Shown: positions 21,938-51,018 of the stretch, in pieces
How positions within the stretch are numbered: the first letter of the stretch is position 1
How the letters are laid out: each line of letters opens with the position of its first letter
Assembly (NCBI GenBank): GCA_963924565.1
Contig: OZ004614.1
Location: 22,072,001-22,136,000, forward strand
Source of the DNA: Ascidiella aspersa
Lineage: Eukaryota
Direction: 5' to 3'
Length of the DNA: 64,000 nt
Notes under the pieces: generated by a model
The model's database searches: none
What the model saw: the letters and a program-made list of their open reading frames with translations, nothing else
Told to the model about the DNA's origin: nothing
Made by a program: the position numbers and the translations under genes

Positions 21938-22023
21938 TCAAGATGCTGTCGATCTACTCGACCTTTTTGGCTTTCCAAATCATTATCAAGCTACATTACA
22001 GATCCGTGCATATAGTGTATAAA
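21898..22023 (+). mobile_element. Penelope-like-element-derived short element, family F
   Basis: Shares body and tail with 7818-7947. Flanks AATGCACTTT (21888-21897) and AATGCGCTTT (22024-22033) give a 10-bp TSD matching 9/10. Begins with a hammerhead-like core. Confidence 0.7.
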
Positions 22024-28514: not shown

Positions 28515-29988
28515 GTTTAAACCGACCCACCCGTATTCCAAAGGGCTTGCCAACTCGTCGCTCAACGACAGCGCTCGCGAGGCTTGGCAATGAGCCAGGG
28601 AAGGCGAAACCAAATGCGCGCGCTGCTCAGGTTCGAGGGAACACGTCTGGTCCGGCTTCCACGGAAGGATCGCGGTCCATTTATCACTTTCCCGACCCGC
28701 CTGATGCCGATACTGATAAGGGACGAGTGCAGAATCGGCAGCAGGGGTATAGAGGTCCTTTTGACGGGCGGCGGAGTGCTTAAGTTCGTTGGTTCGCATT
28801 TACCGACGCTTATAGTCTAGACGCCGCGTTCGACAGCCGAAGGGTCAAGGGTTAAAAGCGAGACCCATTAAAGGACGATCTGCGCGTTTACTTGGACGCC
28901 TTGCCTTGTCAGGTCGGTATGCGGCCCGGCGCTGTCAACAGGATATCATTCTACCTGTAGGTTTTACTTAGATGGGCGGAGTCATGTCCAGGTTTTACTA
29001 CCCAGGACAGATCTAAACTAGCTGGTAGAAGCCTCGCAAACCTTTTCGTGCATATAGTTTGATGCAGACTGCAAAATAGAGAACCTTGTGCTTCAAGCTC
29101 AAACGCACTTCAACCAGGTCGAACGGCGCCGACGAGGGTCCCTGGCCTGCAGAACTGATCGGAAATCGATCATACCTGTTTTGCCAAGCCATTGACAGGC
29201 TTTCACTTGAAGCCGCAATTGTGGGACGCCCTTGAGAAGTGGCTGCACACACAAACTCGCGATCGCTGCCGGCCAAGTTCGACCCACTTAAGTTAAGGGT
29301 ATTTTCTAAACTGCCTTGTTAGAAGTAAACCAAATTTAATCCAGCTAAGAACAACCAGCAACCTGCAATCAAAAAAAGGTAAGGCGCTCTTATGCAGCCC
29401 GAGCATTGTCAAATTGCCTTCAAAAACTAGTCATTCCTGTCAAAATAATTTCTACCTACGCTTGCGCTGCAAATCGCGGTTTGTTAGAGCGCCAAAGGGG
29501 CCAGGTTATACCACATTCCTCTGGCAATATGCCCTTGTTCGCCGAAATCGCCATCACGCAGGTTGTCGTTTAACTAACGCCACTTCCACAATCAATATTG
29601 CACCACAAAGCCTGTCAAGCAGCAAATCTCCAATTAAAAAGCCGCCAGCAACAGCAGCGGTTTGGTAAATCCCAAAGCGCTGGCACGCTAAAGCTGGGGC
29701 GCCGCAACATCGTTTCCGGCAGGTATCTTGAAACTGATTGACAGCGCTTGTCAGAGAGCTGCCTACACACGCGCGGGCCGCTACTTCCACTACTACTGCT
29801 GCTTGCTTGCCGGTTTTGGCCGCTGTACTCTCGGCCTATGCAAAAAAACGTGCCAAGCCACATTAATCAAGCGGTTTTTTGAACACTCGCCACGTTTTAA
29901 CGGCTGACTTAAACAACACCTGGTTCGCACTTGCTTTAAACCGACTCTGACGTTGAGTTATTGTCAACAAACTAAATGAAAATTAGAA

Positions 29989-30151
29989 TTTGGAGCATAA
30001 TATTTAGTTGTAGTAAGACGTAATAAGAATATTAAACCCATACAGAGCTATGGTATAATTTTGAACGTTTTGGATAACTCTTTATTCATTTTCAACATAG
30101 AATCAAGAGTTATTTGAAACGTGCAAAATAATACCTACTTCTGTATGGGCT
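29989..30151. mobile_element. foldback Penelope-like mini-element, family E (copy 1)
   Basis: Long arm 29989-30098 with an inverted partial arm at 30100-30151; homologous to 43209-43393. Possible degenerate TSD AAATTAGAAT/AAATTCGACT. Confidence 0.8.
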
Positions 30152-31489
30152 AAATTCGACTGTTGCTTTGCAAACGGCCCTTGTTGTTTCTGCAATTGAA
30201 AGCGGCGGACGAGCGTTGCTTGATGATGAATGTGGTGAGTCGTGAGGCAAGGCACGAACTGGGCAACGCACAATTGCGGGACGCAACCGAGCCTATGTAT
30301 CCGATATGAATACAATGGTGCGTACAAGGGGTCGCATTGAGCAAAACTTGCAGTGAACCGCGTGCGACCACGTTTTTGTTCAACACTTTGTTTTGTTCGA
30401 GCGCCACCGCGGAAAGAGAAACCGAGAAATAAATCACAACTTTTTGAACCGCCTTAAATGGTGGGCTGGTTATGCGCGTTGGTTTCTTTATGTGAAGACA
30501 TTTCCTTATACAAGTTTCGTAAAATAAGGGTCGTCTATTTAAATATGCCTCAAACCTCACGGTTTTCATAACATCCAGCTTGAAAATACACCCATATAGA
30601 ACCTTATAAAAGAAAAAAAAGAAAACAAAAACCAATAAAAATGCCAGAATTTTTTGAGACCGTCTTCCCAGATTTGTAAAAAGGCGCTAAATCTTACCAA
30701 AAAAATGTCGAACCGACGGATTGGGTAAAATTTGAGCTTTGCGTATTGAAGCTGCAATCGTTCTTTGCATCCAAACGAATTTCCAAGGCTAAATTTACTT
30801 GACAGAAAACCGTTGGCTATAATCGTCATGGCATTTAATCTGAAACTTAAAATCAGCGACGTTCATATTTGGGAAACAGTGCTGTACAGTGTACACGTAT
30901 CTGGTACGCTCGATTTCCGTTATTGAATAATTAACGGCCTATAGTGATGGTTTAAAGTAAAGATAAACGTTTCGGATTGATATGGCATAGTTTAGGTAGA
31001 TGGTTAAACTGGTTACTGGTACGGCGCCTAATTTTAAATACCAAATACGCTAATACTAGACGCGTGCATCACATTTCAAAAGGAACGATTACGTAATACA
31101 CTTTGTCGGGCAAGCGTGGCAACAGAAGATTACCCAGTTACATTTCACAGCAACAGCAACACAAGCGTGTATAGCAACACTTTTCGTACTAGTTCAACCG
31201 AAAACTCTATAGTCCGATGTCAATCACGTGGTTTTGGAGCGGAGTTACGTAAGAGAAGCGAGTAGACCATCCAATGGTACTCGCGCTCTTGTACGTGGAT
31301 TTAATTTCCAAGGGTGTCACAATGACTTTGTTACGTCTTCAAATTCAATCGTGATAGTAAACGTTTTCAGGTATTATTATCCCATGACAAATGCATTCTA
31401 AATCAATTTGCTAGAAAAGTGCACGACTCGATTAAGATTTTCCGATGCTACATTTGAAAAAAAAATAAAAATACGTACATTCCAATCGC

Positions 31490-31790
31490 TGTGTACGTAG
31501 CAAGTTTAGACATCCCAAGAAAAAGATTTTTTTGGAGAATCACCAAATGGGATTATAAGATACGTAACGACTTCAAATTATTTCCTTGTGATATTAATCA
31601 CGAGCCAAACTGTTAAGTACAACACACCGATCTGTTTTGGTGTAGGTAATTTTAACATCAATTTAAATATAGAAATACTTGTTTTGAATAAGCTTTTATG
31701 TAATAATTTTGATACTTTAACAAGCTAAATCTTCTTACTTTGTCTGAACGTTCTACTCAATCGACGAAAAACCTTGTCAGCACCACCTTT
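31490..31790 (+). pseudogene. decayed non-LTR retrotransposon (CR1/L2-like) AP-endonuclease remnant
   Basis: TTTAGACATCCC (FRHP ~ YRHP) at 31505 and GGTAATTTTAACATCAATTTA (GNFNINL ~ GDFNINL) at 31645. Correct order, but frameshifted. Confidence 0.4.
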
Positions 31791-32808
31791 TCGCAAATAC
31801 GCAAAGATACAAGGAATTTCTCGCTTTTCTACGCCACACGTGATACAATTAGCAAATATACTCCGAAGTTAGCAATAGCTGCCTGTCTGTTGCGTACGGC
31901 ACTAAATAGAACACCTTTTCTCCGCCTGCCTTTCACGTTACGGAAAGGCGCGCAAAAACGCTTCCAACGCACACGTTGCGACGTTTCTGGTACAAAAGTG
32001 CGAGCAATCATACCGAAAAGGGCAAATGATTCATTGCGTTTCGCGGAAAACGAGCGACTTAACGGGGATTTTATTTCCGATGCATGACCGCTCGACTGCT
32101 ATATAGAGACGCGGTGGCGAAAAAGCGTGATTTATTTAGTCGTTTGACGTTTCTAACGCTATATTGGTGTGGATTCTGACAAAACGACAAATTTGTTGGG
32201 AGATTTTATTGGATTCTGGCAAATCACAAAGTCAGTTAATTGGCAGAGTTTTAAATGAGAAAGGACTTAAGGAGACTTTCCAACAATCCAGAAACATTTT
32301 AAAGGGTGATGTCTTTTTGACACAAACCATGTACTCAGACAAAGGCTATTCGGCCTCTATGACCGCAATATATTTACTCTTTGTCTGCATTTCGAACCCT
32401 TACAGACAAAAGTGAGCTAATGTCAACTACCGTAAAGTTTACGGTTTAATGTTTGGATCAAACGGCGATTAAAAGTCAGAGGCGCTTTGTTAAGCGGGCG
32501 AAATAAATTCGCCCCATAAGGACCGACAATGGCGGTTTGTCATCTCGGACAAACAGTCGTTATCCAAAAAGCTATCAATCTATTTTCGGCAGGCAGGTTT
32601 CGTTTAACACACCCATCAGACACCAACTGGAAAACAAAGAATTGGCAGACGATTCAACAGTACCTTTGAAATCACAGTTGCGCCGAAGGTAAACAAGAAA
32701 AGCGATGTTTGGTCTACAGCTGATGCTGGGGAATTTGTTATTGCTGTCGGCACTATTTTGGACCTAACGAATCGAGCGAGCAATATTGACGCTTTGTAAT
32801 AAAATTGT

Positions 32809-33302
32809 CGGTGTTGTAATGAATTACGCTAGTGACTTGAATACACTTAAGTCACGGTTTTCAAATGACTTGACTTGAGTTAAGTATTTTCACCAAAATG
32901 ACCTGACTTGATTCAAGTCTTGAACTGAAGCCATTATGTCAAATAACTGAGGTTAAACTTGAGTGTTTTTATTAAACATTATTTAATAAAATAGTTATTT
33001 ATGTCAATTTGCACACATAAAACATTTTTCTTGCTGTATAATGCGTTTTTTGTTATTTTAGGTGTGTTATTGGTCATATAATCGTAGGACGATTTTACCA
33101 ATTTTAATCGTTTTATGTTTTATTTTTATGTCAATAGCTTGACTTGAAGTTGAAGTGCGCTCAAAATGACTTGACTTGGGCAATTGATGACTCGGGCTGG
33201 GATTTGAGTTATTTTGGAAACGAATTTAATTGGACATAAGTTATTTTTCAAATGACTTTGCTGAGACTTGAGTCATTTCAAAATGTCTTGTTCAGAACAC
33301 TG
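32809..33302. mobile_element. GACTT-repeat MITE, full length
   Basis: CGGTGTTGTAA ... TTCAGAACACTG, with AATTGT on both flanks. Colinear with 26511-26948. Confidence 0.8.
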
Positions 33303-34029
33303 GAATTGTTACTTTCATTGGACACGGTCTAAGGTTGCGACGAAAGTTTGAAACAAAATTTTCATGGCTTTACAAGATGCCGAAACTACAAGTCACGTCA
33401 TGTTTGAACACCGACTTTGTGTTTCTATTAATGCTGAGTCATGCATACTGGCTACAAAGCAGCAGCAGAAGCAGCAGAAGCAGCGAATTTACTGTACGTA
33501 TAGTAAGCGGTCATGGCCGAACTTAAAGCAGCTGTTAGCCAGGGCTTCGGTAACGTAAGCTAATTGATGCCAGCTTGAAAACCGGGGCAAACCGTAAAGC
33601 GAGTTCCACGCCACGCGTTTAGCCACTCAACAGATAACAAGTCGTCTTTCGACAGCAGCGGGAATTTACCGCGGCACAAATCCGTCTTTTACCTTGATTA
33701 CGACACATCAGGAACAATTCCACGACGATGCTATACATTATTTATCCACCCGTCTTTGTACATCTTTCTGTTGTGATGAGCAATCAACGGCAGAACAGAC
33801 GGAACGCACAAACACCAGTCATAAAATGGACTACACAAAAAACAACCCCAACACGGGTCTGTCAAGCAGCCGGCTACGATAATACTTTGAGACCTTTCAA
33901 TCCACACTATAACATGTCATCTAGAAACCGAAATCTGTTTTATGTCGTGCACTCGCCTACACCACATTGCAAACTGTTCTTCAATCACGAGCCTGCGTGA
34001 ATAATTTATTGCGCCATTCTCGCCGAGGC

Positions 34030-34110
34030 CCCGCTCGGTTATTTATACTACGGGGGGGGGGCAAGCGTCATTGTGACGTCACTGCGTCGCGCGACGTGGA
34101 AAATTTCGAG
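34030..34110 (-). promoter_or_regulatory. candidate TATA + CRE core promoter facing ZMIZ1
   Basis: In minus-strand order: TGACGTCA (34074-34081), C-tract (34052-34061), TATAAATA (34047-34040), in CpG-rich unique DNA. Confidence 0.35.
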
Positions 34111-35039
34111 CACGACCGACGCCGCGCCTCTTGGCTTTTTAGGAGTTTTTCTTGAAACTTTGCATACTTGTAAAACGTGCGCGCTGACTTACGCTGTTAA
34201 TGTCACGCTATATGTATATGGTGCATCTATGTAGACATTTAATTTAGAGCAAGGAGAGAAAATAGCGCACAGTTAATATAATTAGCGACTTGCACAGCCG
34301 TATACGTTACCCTATACGTTAGTTTTCCGGCTTGATATTTCTATGATGCACATATAAATATATAAAATTGTTGTGAATTAAGGGCTATGTATCAATCCGG
34401 AAATCTGATTGTTTTGTAACCTATATTATAAACCCTCAAAAACAGTTGAAACAGTTGTTCTGTTAAAATTCGTTACCAACAATGGATGAAAACTCAACAA
34501 ATGTGCTTCGTTGTTAAAATCGCCAGCTGGAAAGCTAACAGGCAAGCAATAAAACCGGTGCGGAAATACCCGCATCCAATTCATAAAGGAAAACTGCTCA
34601 AAACCGCAGACTGATGCGAAACAAATCCCAAATAAACAAAGCGCGCGCTCTGAACGGGACAAAGGCCACCGCTACAGTTCCTTCGCTCTTCTGTCCGCAG
34701 AAGATCACAATGTACTTGCATCCGGGATAGAGCTACTTCGGCCGCTTTTTCCGACAGACAGCGTTGAGCTACTGTGGAGCCGCTCAAATCCGCACTCTCG
34801 GCTGCGGTTGCATTCCCATCCCTGTTAATTCTACCTATATAAGTACGTTAAAACATAGCGTTGACTTCGAAACCTAGCGCTATTCTAGAGCCTTTTTTGA
34901 TTGCGTTACGAATGTCGGTGTTTTTTTTCTGCTCCCTGTTATTTCGGCTAGCCGAGTGATTCGCAACCCGAGGCCTACCATGTGGTTTTCGGCGACCCCG
35001 CGCAACCTATTTGCAACTTTTGGCAGCGTACAGTTTGTA

Positions 35040-35330
35040 TAATTGATGATTAGAATCCTGACCATATACTGTATTTTTTTAAATTTGTCTGTTTTAAAAA
35101 CTGATAGGGTCCGCCATAATTTAAAAGCAAAACGGCTCTAAAGGTTAAACAAGTTTGAGTACCATTGCACAAGGACCTATTTGGCAAAAAAAAAGTTATA
35201 CTTGAAATTTGTAAACCATATAAATAATCCATTAGATAAAAAAAACCATGCCCAAGCTGTAGAAAAACGCGCAACCTGATATTAAGCCATGAATCTGTGA
35301 AACGAATGCACCAATTTATCCAACGAAAAT
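35040..35330 (-). pseudogene. decayed non-LTR retrotransposon reverse-transcriptase remnant
   Basis: Frameshifted minus-strand fragments in RT order: FTDSWLNN, FLQL (~FLDL), WFTNF..LPNRS (~WFxSYLSNRS), LEPFCF..MAD (~LGPLLFLLYINDL). Confidence 0.4.
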
Positions 35331-36116
35331 AGACTTCTCCTTATATACCTGTCTAACGCTACCCAAAACTTTATGTCACTCACGTAGTGGTAAATAGATA
35401 GACTTAAACTGTATACTGTTGTACAACCTTGTAAGCAATATTATTCACCTCAAGAATCCGACTGTTAATAGTACTAAATCTTATCTTATTCCTTAGTCAT
35501 ATCAGCGCTACACTTTTAACATCAAAAAAAATCAGCCCAACAGTAAATAATTTTAACCAATCATGAAATGGTTAAAACGTAACAGTAAATATATACCCGT
35601 GCCTTCAAAAATATGTTGTTACATACAGTTAATTCGTATATAAACGTCACATTATTCGGCGTATTTCCAGAAAAGTGCGTCATCGGTCTATGCTTATCGA
35701 TTAGAAATGCGAAACACTCTGCTATGCGCATATATCGCGTCGCCTCTTTCAACTCTCTTTTGCTTGCAAATAGCAGCTGGCGTGACGCAATTCAACAAGA
35801 CATAGTAATAAACCAACAGGAAACATATTCTGAGAAAGTCAGCTACAACATAAGTAACGACGTCTTTGCGTCGGCACCCTACAGCCGTTCTTTAAAGTTG
35901 CTTGGTCATTTTCGACTTGAGAAGCCTCGCAGAACGGACTCTCCGAATTCGCATCCCTGGGAATTCTGTTCGATCGAAACTGCGACTAAAAGACGGAGTT
36001 AGCAAAAAGGTCGGACGGGAGCAAACGCAATACAGCTTTCCGACGCGAAAGCGAAGACTGGATGCGCACCCGAATAACCCCGGCTTCGCAGTACGGCGTA
36101 TAAGTCTCGTATGTGC

Positions 36117-36120
<4 letters not shown>

Positions 36121-36160
<40 letters not shown>
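36121..36160. repeat. (AC)20 microsatellite
   Basis: Perfect dinucleotide run. Confidence 0.98.
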
Positions 36161-36163
<3 letters not shown>

Positions 36164-36217
36164 TAGCGCGCGTCGGTTAGGCACCAATTCCATCCTCTGT
36201 TAGCAAGGGGTCTAGAA

Positions 36218-36514
36218 CAGTGGTTCTTAATTTTTGGTAACCTGTCGAACCCCTAAGTTATTCTGCAAGCGTTCGTCGAACCCCAAATTTTCGCTCAGTA
36301 TTCGTTTCTTCCTCCTATAGCAGCTGAAACTGGGCATAATCAAATTATCAACTTGACTTTATATAGGTTAAATTGGCCAAACTTTCAAATTATAACGTCA
36401 TATGACACCTTGGCACATAAAAGAGATTCGAATTTAGCTTAAAATAACAACATTTATGTTTTAGAGAACGTCCTCGCCGAATCCCTAAAACAGAACCCTG
36501 GTTAAGAAGCACTG
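36218..36514. mobile_element. hAT (Buster-type) MITE
   Basis: CAGTGGTTCTTAA / TTAAGAAGCACTG. TSD GTCTAGAA (36210-36217) / GGCTAGAA (36515-36522), 7/8. Confidence 0.88.
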
Positions 36515-36928
36515 GGCTAGAAGAATAGTGACTTCCCGGCACACATATATAGCCAATCCAGAAGAGTAATAAACGACCGGTGCATCCTTTTTAATGAGAC
36601 TGCGACAAGAGGTTAAGTGAGACGTATCTTGTTCCATGACCAAAAAAAGCTCGGCTAAAGGCTGTGATAACCTTTAAATCGCGCACATTTTCTTCTTCCA
36701 TTTCGATAAACAAAAATCAATTATATTGGTGGAAAACCTAAGGCAATTATCTCCAAATTAAATTACCCTACTCTCCCGTTTAAATTACAAATAAGGTTAG
36801 AAAAGTTTGTTTAAGTTCAATAATTGTTCTGCCGTTTTGCCTGTCAAGGTGAAAATAGCCTAAGTTGTAATCTTGTAGGAAAAAATATTTTTCGTTGAAA
36901 GAATACTTTACGAAAAGTTAGAAAAAGC

Positions 36929-36997
36929 TAGGCGGGTTGGTAAGACCATAGGCGGGTTGGTAAGACCATCGGAAAGCTAGGCGGGTTGGTAAGACCA
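36929..36997. repeat. three exact copies of the 20-mer TAGGCGGGTTGGTAAGACCA
   Basis: Copies at 36929, 36949 and 36978. Confidence 0.95.
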
Positions 36998-37761
36998 TAT
37001 GTTTTTACTCATTTATAAGTTTTAAGAACTCAAGATTTTAAAGCAAATAATTGAGCTTTCAAAACCATTAAAAACGTAATTGAGCTTTCAAAATCGTCAA
37101 AACTTGCTATGCAAATCAAACAAAAAGTGCACGCAAAGTTCCGAATTGCACATTTTTTCTCGGCCCAGCTTTGGATACACCTTGAAAAGAGCCGGATGTT
37201 TGTGTTCAATTTCTCACAATAGCGTGGAATGAAAGCGGTGTATCTTAAAATGCGCGTCAATGGCCAAATAGTAAAATCAATACGGAGCTATGTTTTTGAC
37301 CGCGAAACGCGTCCAATGTGACCCGAAGACACACGATTCCTGTTGGTGGGGCTTGTGTAGGTTGGGGGGGTCTAATATTTAACCTCCGTCATATTTACCC
37401 TTCGATCGTTACAGCTTAGGACATTAAAACATCACGCCGGTTTGAAATTCAGCAGTTAAAATGGAAGGTTAGACAAACACCGGGAAAACACAAATGCTTA
37501 AAAGCCTCCGTAAATATCATTTTCAATTTGTTGCAGCGATTGGCCTCTTAACGCATAAATACATACAGCCATGCCCGGAAGGATGACCTTTATATACGAC
37601 TTATATAGGTTCGTAAACAACAAGTGCTTTTAATAATGACGACCGTTTGTGTAATTTTGAGAGATCTAGCCACGGCTGGCAAAAACGGGAATTTTCACGT
37701 TTTGAGATCACTGGTTCCACAATTTTTTGCTTAACAAGTGTCATTGAATAGAAAGAAATCG

Positions 37762-37985
37762 AGCTGACCTCATCAGAGTAAACAATTCAAACGAGAATAA
37801 GTTACCTAACTTATATACAGAAAAAAGTATATATTAAAAAAAATATAAAATTAAAGTTGCTGCAGCGTATACCAGCTGGCTCCAGTAAACAATTAAAACG
37901 AGAATAAGTAAGCCGACTTATATTCTGAAAAAAAGTATAAAATAAAAAAAAATAAATTGGCAACGATGCCTCGTATACCGGTCAC
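37762..37985. repeat. diverged tandem duplication, ~107-bp period
   Basis: AGTAAACAATT(C/A)AAACGAGAATAAGT at 37777 and 37884, with continuing similarity. Confidence 0.85.
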
Positions 37986-38478
37986 CTGCATTTAGTTAAA
38001 TCATATAAATACCCAAAACAATTCTTAATAAAGGGGGAGGATCCTTCGGAAGCTGCCCATAAGCCCAATCTAATCCACGTGCCTTTTTACGTAGTGGCGG
38101 TCGTCGTTATTTTGTTGAAATCGCATTTACTGACGATTGTGTAACAGCGATTGACGCAAACGCGTATAAGCACGTACAAAGCCTTGTAAGTACACAGCGC
38201 TGGCAAAAGCGTCACCGGATCTGATTGCGCTATGAACATAAAAAACATCGAACCCGAAAAAAGTAAAACACATTGCCGTCTTGGACTTCAAATTACGGCA
38301 ATAAACGAAACGTATTTGTAATCTATAAATGTAAAAAAATGCACTTCCGCCTATTTACATGCCCTACTCGCTTTCAGTTATCAAGTTAACTAGAGTTAGT
38401 CGATTCAATGTACAACGCCACAAAATTAAAAAAAAAACAATATCGTTTGGGTGCGCAATTAAATCATAGTAGCTATAC

Positions 38479-38623
38479 GTAATAAGAATATCAAAGCCCA
38501 TACAGAAGTAGGTATCATTTTGAACGTTTCGAATAACTCTTTATTCATTTTCAACATCTTCTTCTGTATGGGCTTTGATATTCTTGTTACGTCTTACTAC
38601 AACCTCCAACCATTATGCTCCAT
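38479..38623. mobile_element. foldback Penelope-like mini-element, family E (copy 2)
   Basis: Inverted arms. Hammerhead-like core on the minus strand (38523-38554). 13-bp TSD ATAGTAGCTATAC (38466-38478) / ATAGTGGCTATAC (38624-38636). Confidence 0.85.
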
Positions 38624-38998
38624 ATAGTGGCTATACTTTAATTAAATTTGAGCCGGATTATTATAAGCAATAGGCTCCCCGTCTGTCGGGAAAAACAAAA
38701 CTGTTTAACTTGAACACTATTAATTGGTCGGTGTTAATCACATCAAAGCTTTGTAGAGACTGTTAGACTGTATTTTTACGCTTATTCTCCTGTCTTCTCC
38801 AGGCGCTCGCTCTTTATATACAGTTGCAACCACTGGCCGTTTTCTACCACAGTTTAACAGCGAAAAACTTTGAACCTGTAGGTAAACGGAACTGAGTCTT
38901 TGAAGCAAACTGGCAACATGTGCGAAATCCACAACTTAGCGTTCGACACAGATTGTTAAACCTCGAATATGTCTGTCTATCTCCAAAACACCTTCAGG

Positions 38999-39219
38999 CA
39001 GTAATGTAAACAAATCATTATTTTTTCCCAGTCAAGTCATTAGTAAAATAATTTAAGCATAAATCAAATCGAAAACACTTCATTTCAACCCAAGTCAATT
39101 GACCAAAAGAATCGAGTCAAGTCAAGCCATTTGTCCAAATGAAGTCAATTGGATCCATTTAAAAACGGTGACTTAAGTGCACTCAAGTTGTGTCATTGAC
39201 TTAAGTCCTTACCACACTG
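38999..39219. mobile_element. GACTT-repeat MITE, internally deleted, reverse orientation
   Basis: CAGTAATGTAA ... TTACCACACTG. Flanks CCTTCAGG / CTTTAAGG (6/8). Confidence 0.75.
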
Positions 39220-39720
39220 CTTTAAGGTTTCCGTTTGCGACCCAATAGCATTCTTGCTGAACAACTAGCTCAAGCAATTCAGCAAAACTTCGCGAACAGC
39301 CAGCACGCGTGCGTAACGTCGGGACCGAAATACGGCCTGACGCAAAAAAATCCATTTTCTCCCGTTTGCCCGCTCGCCCTACACAAAAGACGCTGGCGCA
39401 GTAATCGCTGTGCGCGAAATAGAAACGCAGGCGATCGGAACGCGCACGAAATGACTTTTTTTAGAGCTATGCTGTCATTTCCACCGATTCGGATACAAAT
39501 GCGTCACGTCCTTCGACCGAATTCGAATTCGACTTAATTTGCGACGCCGAGCGAAATTGCTGGCGATTCAGGCGCCTTGAATCACTCGCGAAAAAAGCAT
39601 GCTGTATTGCTGGATTTGTGTATATGATTTTACACAGTTCGTGATTAGCCGTTGACCTGACTCAAAATAGCGGACGGGCGGAAAAAAATTAAACTCGGGT
39701 AGTTTTACGCGGTCTTACTA

Positions 39721-39754
39721 GAGTCCCGAGTCCGACTCCGACTCCGCAGCCCTG
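39721..39754. mobile_element. solo terminus of a hAT-like MITE with (GGAGTC)n subterminal repeats
   Basis: CCGACTCCGACTCCGCAGCCCTG is the reverse complement of CAGGGCTGCGGAGTCGGAGTCGG. Confidence 0.5.
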
Positions 39755-40531
39755 GTTCCTCATAATGCACAAAGCTTTTTCGAGTTGGAGTGGAGGTGGA
39801 GTGCGATACGCTTCACGTTCAATTAAAGGAGTTGACTCGAATAGAAACGCCCCTATTTAACCCCAACCCAGTAACCGTGCAAGGGTGTTTAGGCTACCAC
39901 GCTCCCAATGTTTTTCACCAATCTGACTTCGTGTAACAACACCTCGCTGCGTGTAGGCCATTAAAGACAAACGAAATAGCGCAGCTTTACACAACTCGTC
40001 TTTGATTCAGCACCGATTGGCTGAAGCAGCAGAATTATGCCTCGACCTGTCATCTAGTCGCCACCAGTTTTGTATCCTGTTACCCGTGAAATAAGAGAGC
40101 GATCGCGCTTGTCCAGTGTGCTTATAGCTTAGCGTTCTGTTATGTGCAGGGCATATTTTTTTGGCAAACTCAGATTCAGGAACGCTCGCAGAAAATTTTT
40201 GAGCCGCCGTGGAATCATTTTTAAGTATTTGCAGGCAAACTCGTTCCAATTATAAAAACCTCTCAAGGTACTTTTAAAATTGCGAAAATCATCACGATTT
40301 AAGGCAACCCTTTACTTTGCAAAAATGAAGTAATATCTTCGATGGCGGAAAAATTGTCGAAAAGGAAAACTTCGAACGGTTTCAGTAAAATTCTTAACCC
40401 AAAACACATAATAATATTTTGTACTCACCACAATATTAAGGTTATTCACACCGTAACTTTGGCGCTTTCATGGTGTTCAGCAGCAATTGTCAAAAGGTGT
40501 GCACTTACGTGCCTCGAGAGATTCTTAATTA

Positions 40532-41743
40532 TAGAGATGTCCGATAATATCGGATCGGAGCCGATACCCGATACCAAGTGGAAGTGTCGGTACTTATCCG
40601 ACACAAGGTTGGTATCGGTGCTGATCCGATACCAAATTAATATGGAAATTTTAGCCTAAATTTTCAGCGATTTTTTCTAAAAAGATTTATTAAAAAAAAA
40701 ATAACTTAAACTAGAGCGAATTAAACTTCTCAGCGCTGAAATTTACGCCTAGTAAGATTTTTTTTATTTATTTTTTTAGCCTATGACGTTATTTGGTGGC
40801 TGATCAGGTTGCGTTAATTTTCGTCCAAAAACATCAAGTCTCGGTAACGAAGTAAAATATCAAGTATAATAAATCTATATTTTTAAACGTACCGCGATTT
40901 TTTTTTTTACTTAAAAAAAAAATAAAATAAAATATATATAAAAAACAAAATAAAACAATAAAAATACCGATTCAAATTCACGAAGAGTCTTGTAGGCATG
41001 CATGTGAAACTCGAATAGTTAGTAAGGGTAGAGCAACTTTTGTTGTAAAGAAAGTGTAGCGCGAACAATTTTTCTGCGCTTGGCGCAATGCAAATGGAAA
41101 GAGGTTTTTAAGAACCTCTGAAGTACAATGCACGAGCGTATGTACCATCTAGAAATGGGTTGGAATTGCGGTGTTCTACACTTAATATACCAATACCCAA
41201 TATTTTTGACAAAAATTATCACGATCCGATCACCAAATTACGTCATTTCTATGCTCAAATATGCAAAATAAATTTTCAACAGGTAAAAGGTTTCCACGCC
41301 TCAATATGCTTTAGCGTTATATTAAATATTACATCAGGAGAACACAAAATTGTCCCTTAATGGTATCAGAAAAGTTTAAAAGTAGAATTGCTATAGCATT
41401 TTGCCGTGAAATTTAAACGGTTAAACATTGTCTTTAAAGCGTCAAACGACTGAAATGTTACTGGGGTGTTGGGTTGTCGTGAAGAAATCCTAGTTGCTTT
41501 TTTAGAATATGCTTTAAAACTTCAAAGGCATTTTTTAATTACCCCGAGCTCAAGTTTTCAAACGACTACTTTTTAATAAAGTAACTTTTAAGACAAATAT
41601 ATCTCCATTGGATCGCAAACCATGTCTAAAATGCTTAACTGAATATCAGATCGGCACCGATACCGCCAAAGTATCGGACGAGTATCGATTCTATCTCTTG
41701 GCTTCGGGTATCGGCCCCGATCCGATATTATTGGAAGTTCCTA
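40532..41743. mobile_element. non-autonomous DNA transposon (hAT Ac-like) with CCGATA subterminal repeats
   Basis: ~45-bp imperfect TIR: TAGAGATGTCCGATAATATCGGATCGGAGCCGATACCCGA vs TCGGGTATCGGCCCCGATCCGATATTATTGGAAGTTCCTA. No TSD recognisable. A related solo end lies at 61328-61375. Confidence 0.8.
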
Positions 41744-42761
41744 GATTGAGGTGTAAAAGTGATTTTGCGTGGCTTGTACGCTATACTACCTCCGTGAGCT
41801 TGTTTGACAAAAAATACTAAGTTAACATCATACTATAGCGAAAATAAAGTTTCTTCATAAGTAAACTAAAGTTTCTTCATAAGATTGGAAACTTTTCTTA
41901 TCTTATGGAACAGCAGCGCCAGCATCAGTAAATCACAAATGCTACACGCGGTTTAATTTCTTAAGCGTGCATTATTTTACCTATACAGACACATTGAAAG
42001 TAAACGCATTGCGACAAAATGCATTTTGTTATTTTTTGTAAACGAATGTCAACAACTGCACAATAGCTCCTGGCAAAAGGCGTTTGGCCTACACTAAAAA
42101 AAATACACTGGTCGTCCCAATTCTGTTTGGCGCTAAGTGTGTCTCAAATCGGTTAACCTAAAGCTTCCCCACAATCAGAGTAACACCTTATACAGCCTGT
42201 GTAAAAGCGGCATTAATGGAATGGCATTTTTAATTATCTAACTTATCTGCGTGGCTCTAGGGCCTAATTATTTGTTTCTTTAGATTCTCATAATTTTTTT
42301 AATTTGGTTAAAATAGGGTAAAAATGAAAAATTGCAAAACTCTAGTAGCAGCTGCCGCTCGCTTTTTCACAAAAGTATAGCTATACTATGGCGAGACAGG
42401 CCGACTCGAGGAGGCGAATATTTAGTGCCACAACTCTATGCAAACTTCCTTCCATATTTGCACAATTAGCCTGTCACAGGAGCGCCATATGGAGTGAGCA
42501 ATAGCTTCTGGTTTCTTTGTATCGCCGGGTCGCGCCGAAATCATGCGCGAAAAAAATCTCGCGCGCGCCTCAAACTGTTGAAAGGCGAATTTAATTGCGA
42601 AACAGAAGCAGAAAAAAAAAATATCAGAAGCAGAAAAAATATTTAGAAAAAAAACGCTTTATATTAGGCGAAGTTTGAAAACCTAACCACGCTATATCAA
42701 AGTATGGCTAAAAATGAAAAAAAAATGAAAACATTAAGTAATTAAAAAATAATGTACAAAT

Positions 42762-42966
42762 ACGTAGTAAGAATATCAACACCCATACAGAAGTAGACAT
42801 CTTTTTGAACGTTTGCGAATAAATCTTACTTATTTTCAACATCGAATTAATAATTTTTGAAAATGAATAAAGATATATTCGAAACGTTAAAAATGGTACC
42901 TAATTCTGTATGGGCGTTGATATTCTTACTACGTCTTACTATAACCCCCAACCATTATGCTCCAAA
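42762..42966. mobile_element. foldback Penelope-like mini-element, family E (copy 3)
   Basis: Arms 42762-42842 and ~42857-42966 are inverted. The plus-strand arm reads TTGAAAA-T-GAATA..TATTC-GAAACGTTA. Confidence 0.85.
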
Positions 42967-43208
42967 CCTAACAAATAAAATGCAAACTAGTGTTGGATAC
43001 GTAATTTAGCTGTGGGTTAAAAAAACATTTTTTTACGAGGGCTGTCAAAAGGTTAACCGAAACTTGTTGCACACCCATGAATTTATTTCGAGTGAAAACC
43101 TATAATTCAGTGCATCTGCGCCCCCCTTGGTAATGTCCTGGTTAGACCTGCGCTTGAGAGTAAACGCGTTCATTTATGTAAATAATAGTTTAAATCAATA
43201 TTAAAATT

Positions 43209-43393
43209 TTGGAGCATAATGGTTGGAGGTTGTAGTAAGACGTAATAAGAATATCAAAGCCCATGCAGAAGCAGGTATCATTTTGAACGTTTCGAATAAC
43301 TCTTTATTCATTTTCAACATCGACAATGTTGAAAATGAATAAAGAGTTATTCGAAACGTTCAAAATGATACCTGCTTCTGTATGGACTTTGGT
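43209..43393. mobile_element. foldback Penelope-like mini-element, family E (copy 4, best preserved)
   Basis: 66-bp arms 43255-43320 / 43326-43391 are 64/66 complementary, with a 5-nt loop. Perfect 12-bp TSD AATATTAAAATT (43197-43208, 43394-43405). Confidence 0.9.
43326..43366 (+). ncRNA. minimal hammerhead ribozyme-like motif, U3:A8 variant (mirror copy on the minus strand at 43280-43320)
   Basis: TTGAAAA (43329-35), T, GAATAA(agag)TTATTC stem II, GAAAC-GTT. Stem I is weak. Confidence 0.5.
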
Positions 43394-44027
43394 AATATTA
43401 AAATTATGTTATTCGAGCAAAAAAATAACAACAAAATTTAGTCAACAGAATCTGGAAGCGCGGTTCCATTCGAGGTACTTTTGGTAGGCTTGGAAAGGCT
43501 TATGGGCGGGTAAGGAAGGCGGTTCGACTCCTGAGGGACACGCCTTAAAGCAGATGACAATTTGCGACACACTCACTAGCTTAACTACTATGCTAATCCC
43601 AAGCAGTGATAACAGCCTGTGATTAACAAACGGTGCCCATCATTTAAGCCAGGTGTAATTAAGTCGTCGGCACAGCATCTTCACTGTCATTAAAGCGTTA
43701 AACAACCCACATTTGCCGGCCGGCATTTAATTTTCACAGTTTAGTTTTGGAAGCGGAGCAAAGCCACTGATTACTCGCGCCACAGTGACCAACCTGCACA
43801 CTACACAGTGCAAACATTTGCCTAAATTCAGCCAAAGGCTAACCGAAACTTGTTGAGCATTTGTCTGTCAATTGCGTTTTGTAATATAGATTATATAGTC
43901 ATATAAGATAAGGACTTTAAACCTTTCTTATCTATATTAAAGGTTGTAGTATGTTGTACCTGCCTGATAATGCACTTGTAAATGCTAAAGGCACATTTAT
44001 CAGCAGTTTACTAGGTTTGTTATTAAA

Positions 44028-44155
44028 AGTGTAGTTGTTCTACTCCAAACAATCCAGATGCACCTAAGGCCGTGAGCTCGAACCTCACCCAAGCCTGGAT
44101 TACTTTCCTATCCCTTTATGCGCCATGCATAACAATAAACGACAATAAACAAACT
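44028..44155 (+). mobile_element. possible degenerate tRNA-derived SINE
   Basis: A-box-like GTGTAGTTGTT, B-box-like GAGCTCGAACCTC and a repetitive tail ACAATAAACGACAATAAACAAAC. Single copy in the window. Confidence 0.3.
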
Positions 44156-44859
44156 GTCGACGGCAAAACAAAACTGCATCTTTAACATGGCCGCCAAGCG
44201 AGGTGCCTAAAAAGACCCGTCAAGTCAATTGAACCGTTTAGAATTAGATGTTAGGCATTTACAGCAAAAATAAACGTTGAATGTTCGCTAAATCTTATAG
44301 CAGCTGCCTAATATAATAATGTCAATCAAGAACCCAATGCAAATATGTTAAACATTGTATGATTCAAATAAAGGGCTAGGGCTTTTGAACATTGCTAACC
44401 TAGGAGTTTATAAACATGGAAGTTGAAAACGAAATAATTTTGAATAGAAACACCTAACATCGGTACAATAACGTTTATTTTTTGTTCCAAATACGTCATT
44501 CAACTCTATTTTTGATATAGGCTAAATTAAATAATTCCAGTTCTAATTGAAACAAAATCGAAAAGCCACAGCGCTCAGTTTAAAAACTACCATCCAAAAG
44601 TAGTAAACAAACAAAAAAGCAGGCCATTGAACCGCTGTAAGCAACCTGCGCGAAAGGTGATACCAGCGCTGGGCAAACAGCAACAAAATGTAAACTGACA
44701 AACGAAAGCGCCGCCGACTTAACCCAAGGCATAAAGAGCGCTAGGAGAGGCGGTGAGTCCGACTAGCTGAGAGCATCCCGGCACATTTCAGTTTACCCAG
44801 AAAGTCACTCCCATTGAAAGGCAGCGATGCGTGCTACTAGCCAGGCGCACGTTACAAAT

Positions 44860-45340
44860 CAGCAGCAGACGTTAGGCCCGGGCGCTGGACGCGTCACAGG
44901 CAAATATGATTGTTTTCTTTAATGCGGCGGCGCAATGATTTTATTGAGTGGCGCGGCGCAACACTTGTCTCTAATAGCGACCCAGGCTGTGCGCGCCTTA
45001 TCGCTGAAACGATTTGGGAATGTACACAAACCACTCTCCCTCGCTTTCTCTTTTTTCTCGCTCCTCCCTCTACACTCCGCTCTCAGCGCGCTCGCTTTTG
45101 CTCCTGGCTGCTGACTACAGCGCCTTGTTGATTGTAAACGATTGTATACAGAAACCGCAGACGATTATACGCCGAGCTTGCTTCTACATACACAAAGTGA
45201 CGGATTGAACACACAAAAACAACCGCCGCCGTTCAAAGCGGATTTAAAAGTCGCGCAAGGTTGCTGAGTTGCTGTCCGACAGACAATACACATCACTGAA
45301 TTGTGAACGGGTTAACTTCCGGCGTTTGCAACCGAGCGGA
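44860..45340. promoter_or_regulatory. CpG-rich island with a long CT tract; candidate distal promoter
   Basis: GCGCG-rich, polypyrimidine tract at 45033-45075, ETS-like ACTTCCGG ~45315. Confidence 0.4.
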
Positions 45341-46491
45341 AACAGCTTGCAGCCATAACAACAACGTAAACATTGCTAATCTGATTAACATTTTAGGTGC
45401 AAACTAATGTTTTTGCTCACCTTTGCATTGCAAAGCGAGTAATTTGCAACGTTCTACAAGTAATACCAGTCGTTTGTTTTATGGTGAATTCATAATAGTG
45501 TGGGGCTTTAAACACCGTTGACGAAAAAACTTTTTAAAATCGAAAAAGTTTGGCAATTCGGAAGTTAACATTTTAGCTTACATTTATAATATAACAAATT
45601 CCCAATAAATTGTTCCGTTTCAATGACCAAGCTAAACAACAACGAAAAGATAAGATAAAACAAAGGTAGAAAAAAGTTGTTCATTCAATCGACCAAGATT
45701 TTGCTCCTCAGCATTACGTTTTTACTCTATACCGGCATATTTTACCAATGGGTAAAGGTTAGGTCGCGACCGCACTTCGAAATGAAACGATTTAAAATTC
45801 AACTAGTTTCTCAAATAAAATATTTAGCCTCAACCTATTTATCAAAAATGCTTAAGGGGTAAAACTAACTTTCAAGATTTGGGTAAATTTGAAAACGTTA
45901 GGCATTTTGTGCTTAATTTTGCACAGACGGGCTGCTTGTTAATCTTTGGGTTGCTTTGAGGTTTTCTAAAATATATATTTGTTGTTGGGACTCAACAAAG
46001 CAATTATTTTATTTTAAATATAGATGGGTAGAATATAGAAAAGTGAGATTAAACACTCTGCAACCGAGGATAAACTGGGGGTTGGATTTAAAATTTGATC
46101 TTACGACAAAAGTGTTGTTGGTAACCGCTGTTTAAGAAGAAATGCGTTTTTAAGCTTTCAGCAAAATATATATTTTCGTCGGATAGTCGCAAAATTACAT
46201 TTTTTACTAACCAAAAACGAAAGTTGAAAGTAAAATGAGGGCTGAATGTGAAGTGGCAGTCTTTTTTCCATTGACCTAAAAGTTGGGTGGGAATAACTAA
46301 AATGGAAGTAGCCGCTCCCCCCCCCCCCCACACACACACCCGTCCCCCAGTCTCAACCCCTCCCGTTGCCCTGGCAAGCGTGCGTGACAGCGAAAGTGTC
46401 AGAGCACACAAGAGGGGCCGCAACCCCTCACTCGCTAGCTTGCTTGCTCGTATTGGCAGCGAAAGCATTCTTGGTCCTGTATACCTCATTG

Positions 46492-46826
46492 TACAGGCGT
46501 AGCCAGGGGGCACAGGGGCAACTCCCCCCAAACAAAAAATAATAGTTTATAAATATTGTACTCCAAATAAAACAAATAAATTGTTTTGTAGTATTTATAA
46601 GCAGCACCACAATATTCGATCACAGTCATACTTATTAATGAAGTTTTCCTACTTTTTAGTCATTTTGTTTTTGCTCTTTGAATGGTTTTTCAGTATAGCG
46701 TTAAAACTCAGTCAGTTGCTGCTCGAAACGGTTTGCTAGCAAATTTATTTGTGTTCGATACGGCAGTTCATACAATGGCAAAAGCACCACCCACCCACCG
46801 AAAAAAATCGGCTGGCTACGCCACTG
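46492..46826. mobile_element. MITE with CAGTGGCGTAGCC termini
   Basis: TACAGGCGTAGCCAG / CTGGCTACGCCACTG. TSD CCTCATTG (46484-46491, 46827-46834). A partial inverted copy lies at 57221-57423. Confidence 0.88.
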
Positions 46827-47099
46827 CCTCATTGTCGCCGGCACTGTATCAGTGGTGCGTGTCAGCTGGACCGGTGGCCGGTAAGCGAAAAGGCGACGAC
46901 GGAGTGCGCGCTTTTGTCGAAGATGGCAAATATTGACCCGTTTGCGCTGGATATTATCGGCGCCTGTTCGCCGTGTCGACTGACTCTTCACAGAGAAGAA
47001 CTCGTTTCGCTGGGCCGCGATATTTTCAGCTGCGCCCCTTGATTCTCGTTTCGCAGCTCGCTTTCAACCGTTGGCCCTTTGACGCACACGGTTAGACTG

Positions 47100-47664
47100 C
47101 AGTGGTTCCAAAATATACTTCAGTTCGACTCAAGTTTTGTACACATCTCGCGGCCCAAAACATTGTCAGCTTGAATGCAAAAAGCTGTGCTTTGAAATTT
47201 GCAAGCAGTTAATGTTAAAGCGTATTAGTCCACTGACTTTTTCGAAGATGACGTCACAAAGTTGATTCGGGCGTAAAATATAAGTGAAATGTTGTCTAAT
47301 CACGCGAAGCGCGAAAAAGTAGCTCTTATTTGGTAACAATTGCAAAAACTTAAATTCAAAACGACCTGATGCACATTAAGCTCACACAAGAGATTCGCCT
47401 AACATAACGGTATTTTTTTAATTTAACATAATTTGCACGTTGCAGAGTTTATGACTTTTGGGCTAAATAGAATTGACGAAAAACTAGTAAAACGTATAGA
47501 GATGTTCGCGGAAGCCCAAAAATGCTTGTCTTAACATAGTAAATGCTACTAAAAATATAGTTGTATGTGGGCATGAGCTGGTACCCCGGTACCCCTTCTA
47601 GCCAGAATCAGCCCCAACCCCCCGACCTCTAGTGGGTCGCGACCCATAGTTTGGGAAACGCTTG
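47100..47664. mobile_element. degenerate hAT (Buster-type) MITE
   Basis: Starts CAGTGGTTCCAAAA; ends GGGTCGCGACCCATAGTTTGGGAAACGCTTG. No clear TSD. Confidence 0.6.
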
Positions 47665-49297
47665 CTTAAACGTTCCAACGCCCCCTTCTGGCTGTTTGCA
47701 TAAACGCTTTCCTAAAAATGCAGATCTAAAATTTATAGAAAATATTGTAAAGTGTTGTTTAAATGCCTTCTACGCCGAACCCGGTTTGACCCCGATTTCT
47801 GCTCCACGCTAAACAAAGCTGTGACGCCTTAAGTGATTCGGTCGTTTATGAATACAGCTGCCACTTGCGTGTTGCGTCCGACGCGCCACCTATCTTTCCG
47901 GTGAGACTTTTGCTTGGTTGACAAAACTGCCTCACGTCGCAATGTATTCCGTATAGTAGCTCCTAAAATCACTTTTCGTGAATACTTTGCAATGAAAACA
48001 GCATTTTTGCGACTTTTGTACCGTGCCGATTTCTGACCACGATAAAATGGGGTCACCTGTTTTCTTAAATGGCCAAATTAACTGAAAAATGTTTTAGTGC
48101 TATATTTACCAAAAAACTGTTACGCTTTTTTGAAGACGTTGCCGACCAAACAGAGGCATTTTTGGTTATTGTAGTCATGAACAATAATTTCTTTTTTCGT
48201 CAGAAATTAAAGGTTCGTTTTGTCAAAAAATAATCGTGAATCAGAAGAAGCGTTAAAACATTCAAGCAAGTATTCGACAAGAAATTACGTTACGTTGTGC
48301 TCATTTCGGCGCAACACACTTTTATGTAAATCAGTGTTTGATGAGAGGAATGGTCAAGTCATATTCAAAAATGCAAGTCATTTGTTGCGTTACTAAAAAA
48401 AATTATTAAAAAAATAACTCTTTAGTTATACGGTAAGCAAGTCAAGTCCGGCATCAGAAATGAAGAGCAAACTCACGGAAGTTCGTTAGGGATTCGTTTT
48501 TGCGAAACGAGCAAACCTGGTTTCCAACTGTGTTACCTGTTAGTTTGGAAGCCAAAACTGTCAAACGAATTCTTAATTTCCCTTAAAAGAGTGTAATAGG
48601 TGCTAACTTATAAACGACAGACGTCAATAGTGAACGTTGCTTAGCTGCAGTCCAGTTGTTTGGTCTAAATGTTCCTTTGGTAGAACAGAATTGTCATCCT
48701 ATTCGATTGTTGCTTAGTTAGCCAGTAAAGGAAAGTTCGCAGCTCTTTCATTGTACAAATAAGGTATCTCAGTTAACCGTCTCGCTATGTAAACGTGGCT
48801 GGTGATATCGTTCCCCATATTACGAGTCAGGCATTCTCTAACAGCCACTTGACACCCGGACCATTACTCAAACTTTTTATTTTAACCTATCACGTCAGAC
48901 TTCCTTCAGTATACTTCTTTGCTTGGAAGACAACGCAAAGTTAATATTTGAGCGCAGCGCCAAACTCTGTAGAGGCGGAAATGAAGTGTCCGCCCACGCC
49001 ATCTCGCAGTATTATTGACTACCCTTTTTGAGTTTAACTACCCTTTTTGAGTAAAACACGTTCAAATAGAATTTTAAAGCCTTGACGATGGCAGCTGTAA
49101 TCCAGCAGTACCATATATTTCTTTCCTCGTTTTGCGATATTGATTGTTTGACCGGTATCGTGCACGTTTTGTTGGCTCCCTGTATATGGAAAGAAAGTGT
49201 TGCGAAACCCATCAAACGCAAGCAAATATATACTGAAAACAGCAAATATATCTACCGTTAGCTCATAGATCTCCATTGACCTAACACTGACCTATAA

Positions 49298-49722
49298 CAG
49301 GGATGGCGAATCATTGACCCGCGGGTCACTAATGACCCACCACAGATTGTTAATGACCCACTTGTCTCTCTAGAAATACCGCAATGTTATCAATTTTTAA
49401 GGGAAATTAGGAGCTCGAACACTAAATATTCGGACAACCCTGGTTAAACCATGCTGAAAAGCTGTCTGCTGAACTCCTGTAATCCAATAAAAATGCTGCA
49501 GCATTTGTTAACTATTTATGTTCCTAATATTATTGGAGATTCGAATTTGAAAATCGTCCAAAAACCTTGATTTACCAACCCAGACAATAACCTTAAAAAC
49601 GACGCAGATGCTAAGTTTCGCATAAAATGAGCATATAATGAAAAATATATGACCCACTTGTGCATTTTGTAAGGATTAAGGTTTTGTTTGGATCCGTGTG
49701 ATGAAAAGGTTCGCCATTCCTG
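49298..49722. mobile_element. hAT (Buster-type) MITE
   Basis: CAGGGATGGCGAA / TTCGCCATTCCTG (12/13). TSD ACCTATAA / ATCTATAA (7/8). Confidence 0.88.
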
Positions 49723-50071
49723 ATCTATAACGTGCCGAAACCACTGTATAGTATTGGTGTTAGCAAGCGATTTTGGGATTTCCTGGTGGCGGGAACAAAC
49801 GAAATGCAACCCCGCGTTTAACAAAATCTGATTTTGGAGTACTGGAACGCAGAAACAAATTTACACGGGCCTTGTACATTAGCGCGTCAAACGTTCGACG
49901 GCTCGTTTTCAGCGCCGTACGTTGGACAGCAATATGGCAAGTGATAAATCAGGCAATTTTAATTTTCCATCTACTTGGTAGCAAGCAATCGGTCGATGGA
50001 TCGACAAACTCAGAAGTGGCTGGTATAGGGATTTTCGAAACCGTGAAGGGATGTTTTGTGATAGGTAAATG

Positions 50072-50365
50072 CCAACCCCCATGCCTATTATTAAGTGATA
50101 TTTCACTTCTTTTTAGGACAGTTAAGTATTGAGTATTTCTCCACGTGAACAAAAATGAAAAAAACAACAACAATTTTTTTCGTAAAACTGTCAAAAAATC
50201 GTGTTTTTGTATAGCAACCCCGTTGCCTATTATAAAGTACTATTTCACTTCTTTTTAGGACAGTTAAGTATTAAATAATTTTCAACGTGAATAAAAAGGA
50301 AAAAAACAACAATAACATGTTTTTCTTAAAAGTATCAAAAAATGTACACAGGGTTTTTCTATAGC
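50072..50365. repeat. tandem duplication, ~142-bp period
   Basis: TATTTCACTTCTTTTTAGGACAGTTAAGTATT is identical in both units. Confidence 0.9.
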
Positions 50366-50887
50366 TGCCGTATTATATGCACCTTTAAAAGTATCTCGTT
50401 GGTCCTATATATAGCATTACATGTTTTAATATACGTTTGCGTTGTATATTTGCGTGTGTGGGGGCGGTAAGCGTATTGCCACGGCAAAACCTCTACCCTG
50501 TTCCAAGTTATTTGTAAATCATCTACCGAGTTCAAATAACACTCGTGTCAATCCACAAAGAAACGCTCCGTGTGTGATAACAGCTAGTATATGTAAATGT
50601 GACCTTCAAAGCCAATAAAATTTCGCTGTTTGTGCTGGGTAGAAATAGACACAAATGCTGCACATTCTCGAAACACCAAAATAAAATGGGGCCGTTTATT
50701 TTGTTGTACAAAATCTTCAAACCAAATGGAAACAATTGTTGGCATATAGGAGATATTTGCATTACAAGCCTTAAGCATTTTTATTTTGACATTTAGGCAG
50801 CTGGTATTAACTTTGTTTAAGCCTGTACTATCCATTTTATTCAGGCTTGTATATTTGTGGCAGAGCGAGAAACGTAAGACTAAACGT

Positions 50888-51018
50888 AGTAAGAATATGA
50901 AAGCCCATACAGAAGTAAGTATCATTTTGAACGTTTCTGAAAACTATTAAAGATTTATTCTAAACGTTCAAAGTGCTACTTACTCCTATATGGGCTTTGG
51001 TACACTTATCACGTCTTA
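50888..51018. mobile_element. foldback Penelope-like mini-element, family E (copy 5, older)
   Basis: Inverted arms homologous to the family. 14-bp TSD GTAAGACTAAACGT (50874-50887) / GTAAGACTTAACGT (51019-51032). Confidence 0.8.

Follow-up and report, generated by a model that had tools for sequence, protein, structure and literature searches.

To our knowledge, how Penelope-like elements (PLEs) insert into DNA is still poorly understood, and in the only biochemical study both strands were cleaved and extended and reverse transcription started at two internal sites. The cleavage and extension on both strands were seen with purified PLE protein. The two start sites lie in an A+C-rich region, the sequence between them forms the tail of the insertion, and insertion does not require hammerhead cleavage (Frangieh et al. 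2024, PMC11167929). PLE insertions are marked by two features, an inverted, 5'-truncated copy and a tail of 30-40 bp on one side, neither of which is found in the insertions of long interspersed nuclear elements (LINEs) (Craig et al. 2021, PMC8557442). Minimal hammerhead motifs are found in metazoan PLEs, including as pairs close together on opposite strands, and a core with U3-A8 is a natural covariant with approximately 1,300 hits in Schistosoma mansoni (Cervera and de la Pena 2014, PMC4209133). Retrozymes without long terminal repeats (non-LTR retrozymes) are short, non-coding, hammerhead-bearing elements that are thought to depend on PLEs; they occur as head-to-tail tandems of 170-400 nt with canonical type I hammerheads and circular RNA (Cervera and de la Pena 2020, PMC7229834; Li et al. 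2026, bioRxiv 10.64898/2026.07.22.740005). Here we describe family E, short repeats of Ascidiella aspersa, copies of which lie in a 64,000-nt stretch of contig OZ004614.1 (assembly GCA_963924565.1, positions 22,072,001 to 22,136,000, forward strand; here called the window).

Family E is very probably an abundant, non-coding, non-autonomous family of PLE-type retroelements whose usual insertion form is a hairpin. Genomic copies, 30 fetched by similarity and 30 chosen by their positions on contig 1, served to define its unit, which has a length of 113 nt and extends from ATGTTG to CTCCAAA (first letters ATGTTGAAAATG; last letters CCATTATGCTCCAAA). From 5' to 3', it consists of a hammerhead-like motif (positions 4-35), a spacer of approximately 43 nt, and a tail of 32-35 nt that is rich in A+C (69%). 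The initial annotation of the window had the unit begin at the TTGAAAA of the motif; that string is present, but the true start lies 3 nt upstream, at the ATG. A 23-nt pattern from the tail, with up to 2 mismatches, occurred 3,522 times in the 308-Mb genome, and a 23-nt pattern from the body occurred 7,519 times; the reversed control was 0 for each. The copy number is far above chance expectation. Bodies outnumbered tails more than twofold, indicating that some copies have no tail at either end (e.g., copy 5 of the window).

We tabulated the anatomy of 65 copies, with statistics on target-site duplications (TSDs) from 43 copies and a positional sample of 26. The typical insertion consists of a TSD, an inverted arm, a junction, a sense arm running to position 113, and the second TSD, with the tail at the 3' end. 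Head-to-head hairpins made up 77% (20/26) of the positional sample, and the remaining 6/26 were monomers. The outer end of the inverted arm always fell at unit positions 65-92 (median 78-81), giving a median tail of 32-35 nt. None of the dispersed insertions tabulated had an inverted arm that reached position 113 (the single exception is within a tandem cluster at locus L007), and the tail of 32-35 nt is therefore one-sided. TSDs were 9-17 bp (median 12) and 77% A+T. Two monomers begin at unit position 1, one of them with an extra 90-nt segment upstream, and other copies are 5'-truncated. Monomers and truncated forms are also flanked by duplications, and a copy consisting of only the last 25 nt of the unit, within the tail, has a duplication of its own.

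The centres of the hairpins are variable. Nearly all of the approximately 50 junctions listed were different, and only junctions of 0-2 nt recurred. The filler at the junction was 0-76 nt and frequently consisted of short repeated stretches from the 5' end of the unit itself. A gapped pattern for the centre junction gave at least 100 matches per strand, which we used as a lower bound. The inverted arm extended exactly to position 1, with the tail-bearing arm starting at 4-68, in 9 of the 20 hairpins of the positional sample; the reverse pattern was rare. The tandem cluster (L007, 1248-1725) contains an internally deleted hairpin unit in approximately 2.5 head-to-tail repeats and terminates in a copy with both arms complete, an arrangement that resembles the partial tandems typical of PLEs.

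We found that this insertion anatomy is a miniature of that of two autonomous PLE families in the same genome. There are at least 62 matches to the GIY-YIG domain, and two families with reverse transcriptase (RT) and GIY-YIG domains and a minimal hammerhead, PLE-A and PLE-B, are listed in the table. The open reading frame (ORF) of PLE-A has an RVT_1 domain and, at its C terminus, a GIY-YIG domain, with a canonical minimal hammerhead approximately 235 nt past the latter (CUGAUGA, bulged A, 4-bp helix II, GAAA, GC, UU). Copies of PLE-A end either 53-55 nt past the cut site or 36 nt beyond that. At every PLE-A locus with an inverted pair, one end is long, the other is short, and the TSD is 10-12 bp (e.g., L034 and L035); the one-sided tail is 36 nt, the arms are very unequal, and the unique centre is 326-528 nt. 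PLE-B has the same order of domains, a hammerhead with CUGAUGA, bulged U, 3-bp helix II, GAAA, the palindrome UGCA and UA, and two classes of ends as in PLE-A, with a tail of approximately 78 nt and TSDs of 10-11 bp. In family E, the predicted cut is at 35/36, the short end 43-46 nt beyond it and the long end 78 nt beyond it. Separately, the best GIY-YIG matches of the assembly were on small contigs: L032 (contig 11) and probably also L031 (contig 35). The ORF at L032 is a bacterial-type UvrC (GIY-YIG and UvrC RNase H domains), and this contig is probably from a contaminant or symbiont.

Family E also resembles PLE insertions described elsewhere (PMC8557442, PMC11167929): it has a head-to-head inverted copy truncated on the 5' side; a tail of 30-40 nt that, where present, is confined to one end, a range that includes the family E median; an A+T-rich target with a TSD of variable length; a minimal hammerhead (in family E, hammerhead-like) upstream of the ends; and an A+C-rich region where reverse transcription starts. 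It differs from those PLEs in that it has no ORF, the whole unit is 113 nt, and dimers are approximately three quarters of the insertions; moreover, it shares no sequence similarity with PLE-A or PLE-B. Unlike retrozymes, family E is dispersed, its dimers are inverted (with L007 as the one tandem cluster), and no discrete RNA was seen. The proposal that the repeats are PLE-derived and mobilized through RNA is supported by an anatomy that is not that of a miniature inverted-repeat transposable element (MITE), the match to PLE-A and PLE-B, and the published signature (PMC8557442, PMC11167929). The ends were asymmetric and the TSDs ranged over 9-17 bp, where fixed termini and a fixed short TSD would have pointed to a DNA transposon.

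The two arms of a copy share source variants. At unit position 35, the arm pairs were T/T in 25 copies, C/C in 12 and discordant in 4 (Fisher p = 9e-7). At position 49, they were A/A in 37, G/G in 5 and discordant in 1 (Fisher p = 6e-6). Copying of a whole palindrome could not keep new mutations mirrored, indicating that the second arm is remade at each insertion. The differences between arms within a copy cluster at the CpG sites at unit positions 27-28 and 32-33, which fits decay after insertion through CpG methylation.

We consider it likely that PLE machinery copies family E, as a non-autonomous retroelement, from RNA into genomic DNA, with the 113-nt RNA unit as the template. The endonuclease would make staggered nicks 9-17 bp apart in A+T-rich DNA, and the two 3'-OH ends would prime reverse transcription on the same RNA or on RNAs from the same source. 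One cDNA would start at the distal site (~113) and the other at the proximal site (~78-81). The cDNAs would come together at the RNA's 5' end, where an untidy join would leave 0-76 nt of filler as well as small duplications, and the outcome would be a hairpin-shaped insertion with a tail at a single end. The data show the anatomy, the copy statistics, the identical anatomy of PLE-A and PLE-B, and the concordance of the two arms; we infer both the priming from two strands, as opposed to the snap-back of a single cDNA, and which PLE would give the protein.

Several observations weigh against copying by PLE machinery in this way. The initial annotation had proposed a search for copies attached to an ORF with RT and GIY-YIG domains. 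No such link was found. When family E was compared by BLAST with 30 GIY-YIG loci, matches did not exceed 12 nt, and no autonomous partner sharing sequence with family E emerged. A genome search with RVT_1 gave only matches of LINE and LTR type, none adjoining the long-form copies described below, and the many intact LINE-type RT ORFs in the genome could include a LINE partner. In RNA-seq data (one run, same species), family E was covered on both strands to a depth of several hundred, with no coverage of unique flanks, and 97% of the reads continued into unlike sequence, indicating that they came from copies embedded in longer transcripts. These data showed no discrete starts or ends: no 5' end stood out at position 1, and there were no ends at the predicted cut site. 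A long form also exists, with approximately 90 nt of additional sequence upstream of position 1, the putative 5' end of the RNA. Finally, the arms of some copies show symmetry around the centre (27/27 and 44/44), which also fits snap-back or later deletion at the centre of the palindrome.

The upstream sequence of the long form, segment X (~90 nt), lies directly upstream of position 1 in a minority of copies (156 candidates at first look), and many RNA reads that cross position 1 run into it. Several junction fillers are pieces of X, which indicates that longer transcripts exist. Segment X may represent the source transcript's 5' portion. At L092, X is in a composite hairpin of 464 nt that recurs near several chromosome ends. 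On contig 1, a long-form copy and a weak GIY-YIG match are 2 kb apart (20972454-20972652, minus strand, and 20974596-20974799, plus strand). On contig 3, a pair of X segments in facing orientation is separated by 1.4 kb (15368530, minus strand, and 15370035, plus strand). These sites are possibly leads to a longer, perhaps autonomous, relative.

The strongest alternative is that a single target-primed cDNA folds back, copies itself, and stalls approximately 35 nt before its own start. Such snap-back would account for the concordance of the two arms, the centre-symmetric copies and the junctions of only 0-2 nt. It cannot yield the 9 of 20 hairpins in which the inverted arm reaches position 1 and the tail-bearing arm starts at 4-68, and a fold-back loop of zero length is sterically impossible. 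The PLE-A pairs, with their very unequal arms and unique centres of 326-528 nt, and the finding that PLE protein extends both strands (PMC11167929) also argue against it. We regard snap-back as unlikely.

A second alternative, which we judge very improbable, is that family E is like a short interspersed nuclear element (SINE) that is moved by a LINE, its inversions arising by twin priming. Variable duplications of 10-15 bp and 5' truncation are also seen with LINE insertion, and the LINE-type ORFs noted above could be a source of protein. Twin priming gives non-overlapping segments and not two copies of one sequence. Family E has no poly(A) or microsatellite at its 3' end and no Pol III-type head; ARAGORN found no tRNA in segment X, and Rfam gave no match to tRNA, 7SL or 5S. 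The second start, fixed 32-35 nt from the end, and the 77% of dimers match the PLE-specific tail (PMC8557442) and both PLE-A and PLE-B. As a third alternative, a DDE transposase would move family E as a foldback DNA transposon or MITE. The long inverted repeat and small size resemble such an element, and a repeat finder would report one. This reading is barely credible and is contradicted by the lack of symmetric terminal inverted repeats and of a fixed duplication length (asymmetric termini, TSDs of 9-17 bp), by monomers and tail-only fragments with their own duplications, by a centre unique to each copy, and by source variants mirrored in both arms.

The hammerhead-like motif provides a further link between family E and PLEs. 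It reads UUGAAAA, then a U bulge and a helix II of 6 bp with a closing G-C pair and the loop AGAG, followed by GAAA, CG, U, and finally U or C. The 13 positions counted as fixed comprise the conserved bases of the core and the pair G10.1-C11.1; eleven of them are unchanged, and the other two, 3 and 8, are jointly changed to U-A. The motif also has an unpaired base between 9 and 10.1, a palindromic CG at 15.2-16.2, and an H17 that is not G. In all of these features (the U3-A8 core, the unpaired base at 9/10.1, G10.1-C11.1 closing a long 6-bp helix II, the palindromic 15.2-16.2, and U or C at H17) it is like the minimal hammerheads of metazoan PLEs, including Cercyon of S. mansoni for the U3-A8 core (PMC4209133). 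H17 is U in approximately two thirds and C in approximately one third and is the main polymorphism among source copies; this variation is permitted by hammerhead rules.

We searched 726 kb of strand sequence with a descriptor of the PLE minimal hammerhead that allows U3/A8, a check that the initial annotation had proposed. Family E arms accounted for 80 of the matches and PLE-A copies for 18, with a single match elsewhere. The same descriptor gave 0-1 matches on block-shuffled sequence. We estimate the chance that two random hits among the 13 fixed positions would produce the compensating change at 3 and 8 at approximately 0.4%. The motif was most likely inherited from the terminal region of a PLE, and it is probably still under some constraint. 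Only 3 and 8 differ, and they do so in a compensating manner.

Other results speak against ribozyme activity. Helix I is limited to two pairs, G-C and U-A, and is the sole published hallmark of PLE minimal hammerheads from which family E departs; a helix I of 2 bp, as in Drosophila virilis, is unlike the 4-5 bp of most of them (PMC4209133). In the minimum-energy fold, core bases pair with those of the cut site. The tabulated copies had no excess of cDNA ends at position 36, and RNA-seq read ends did not pile up at the cut site (35/36), although this is weak evidence. Rfam gave no match in a scan of the window at gathering thresholds, and a family E copy at E values up to 10 matched generic microRNA-hairpin models only, with no hammerhead. 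At E values up to 10, Rfam misses the canonical PLE-A hammerhead too and so has no power to judge minimal motifs. A genome search with RF00163 gave no match among the 74 of 39,749 candidates that were scored. The hammerhead core with U3:A8 proposed in the initial annotation appears to be correct as a sequence feature and consistent with the PLE hallmarks; as a variant it is not new (PMC4209133), its helix I is 2 bp, and it is at most a putative ribozyme.

A family with a similar layout, family F, is at 21897-22023 of the window (CUGAAAGA, U, 5-bp helix II, GAAAC, GUC). Family F has one extra base in the first core box, and Rfam gave no match to it at E values up to 10.

An ORF for RT and GIY-YIG, the mark of an autonomous PLE, was absent from the 113-nt unit, and the long form (~330 nt) had no ORF of at least 100 amino acids. 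Frame 1 of the unit (positions 1-111) is open for 37 codons from the ATG at position 1, which is not significant by itself (chance p about 0.1-0.25), and the 37-codon peptide matched only other family E copies in a tblastn search. Another ATG is made up of A9, the bulged base and G10.1, which is where an Anolis PLE has its ORF start, and segment X has an in-frame stop 4 codons upstream of the unit ATG. The predicted folding of the unit was not more stable than that of shuffled sequences (z = 0.70 and -0.23).

BLAST of the 113-nt unit against the window recovered exactly the five copies reported in the initial annotation, and each is one arm joined head-to-head to a shorter inverted arm, as had been described. 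The motif string quoted there was located in copy 2, copy 3 and both arms of copy 4. The variable length of the TSDs also held, both for copies 2, 4 and 5 (13, 12 and 13 bp) and over the genome-wide range. Coordinates are in the table.

Table. Family E copies in the window, with examples of segment X and the loci of the two autonomous PLE families (window positions unless a locus is named)
Feature	Position or locus	Strand	Description
Copy 1	29989-30151	-	older, ~88% identity to consensus; BLAST extent 29989-30151; hammerhead-like motif decayed
Copy 1, complete tail-bearing arm	29989-30098	-	sense on -
Copy 1, inverted arm	30100-30151		unit positions 12-63
Copy 1, TSD	29980-29989 and 30152-30161		10 bp, 8/10 matching
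Copy 2	38479-38623	+	BLAST extent 38469-38622
Copy 2, tail-bearing arm	38558-38622		5'-truncated at unit position 47
Copy 2, tail-less inverted arm	38479-38557		runs inward to unit position 1
Copy 2, hammerhead-like motif	38523-38554	-	in tail-less arm; sole intact motif of copy 2
Copy 2, TSD	38466-38478 and 38624-38636		13 bp, 12/13 matching
Copy 3	42753-42966	+	older subfamily; BLAST extent 42753-42966
Copy 3, inverted arm	42753-42842
Copy 3, filler	42843-42856		14 nt
Copy 3, tail-bearing arm	42857-42966
Copy 3, hammerhead-like motif	42857-42888	+	helix II of 5 bp
Copy 3, TSD	42743-42752 and 42969-42978		10 bp, 9/10 matching
Copy 4	43208-43392	-	young, 98% identity to consensus; BLAST extent 43208-43400
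Copy 4, complete tail-bearing arm	43208-43320	-	sense on -; motif 43286-43317 (-)
Copy 4, centre	43321-43325
Copy 4, tail-less arm	43326-43392		motif 43329-43360 (+)
Copy 4, TSD	43197-43208 and 43393-43404		12/12 matching; few-base microhomology overlap with arm end
Copy 5	50887-51018		old, 82-89% identity; BLAST extent 50884-51021; two short tail-less outer ends (~unit positions 81 and 86), both arms also truncated at centre
Copy 5, TSD	50874-50886 and 51019-51031		13 bp, 12/13 matching
Segment X, examples	L074:1318-1413; L092:2190-2456; L077 filler 1398-1472
PLE-A loci	L033-L044, L057		autonomous RT + GIY-YIG family with minimal hammerhead
PLE-B loci	L046-L059		autonomous RT + GIY-YIG family with minimal hammerhead

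Repeat finders would label family E as MITEs or microRNA-like hairpins, and microRNA models of Rfam match it below threshold. It is possible, and we suggest it only tentatively, that family E is a natural record of PLE priming from both nicked strands on one RNA molecule, at two fixed sites 32-35 nt apart, and that the minimal template in vivo is the hammerhead-like head plus 78 nt. The head-to-head product would also put a constant sequence upstream of each arm, which could be a portable promoter and would make every dimer a potential source copy. Each insertion is approximately 230 bp, and its start sites, duplications and cDNA-cDNA junction can all be read in one stretch. Because these small, complete natural events number in the thousands, family E is convenient for testing the two-strand model of PLE insertion, and its usefulness is mainly as a compact natural record of that process.

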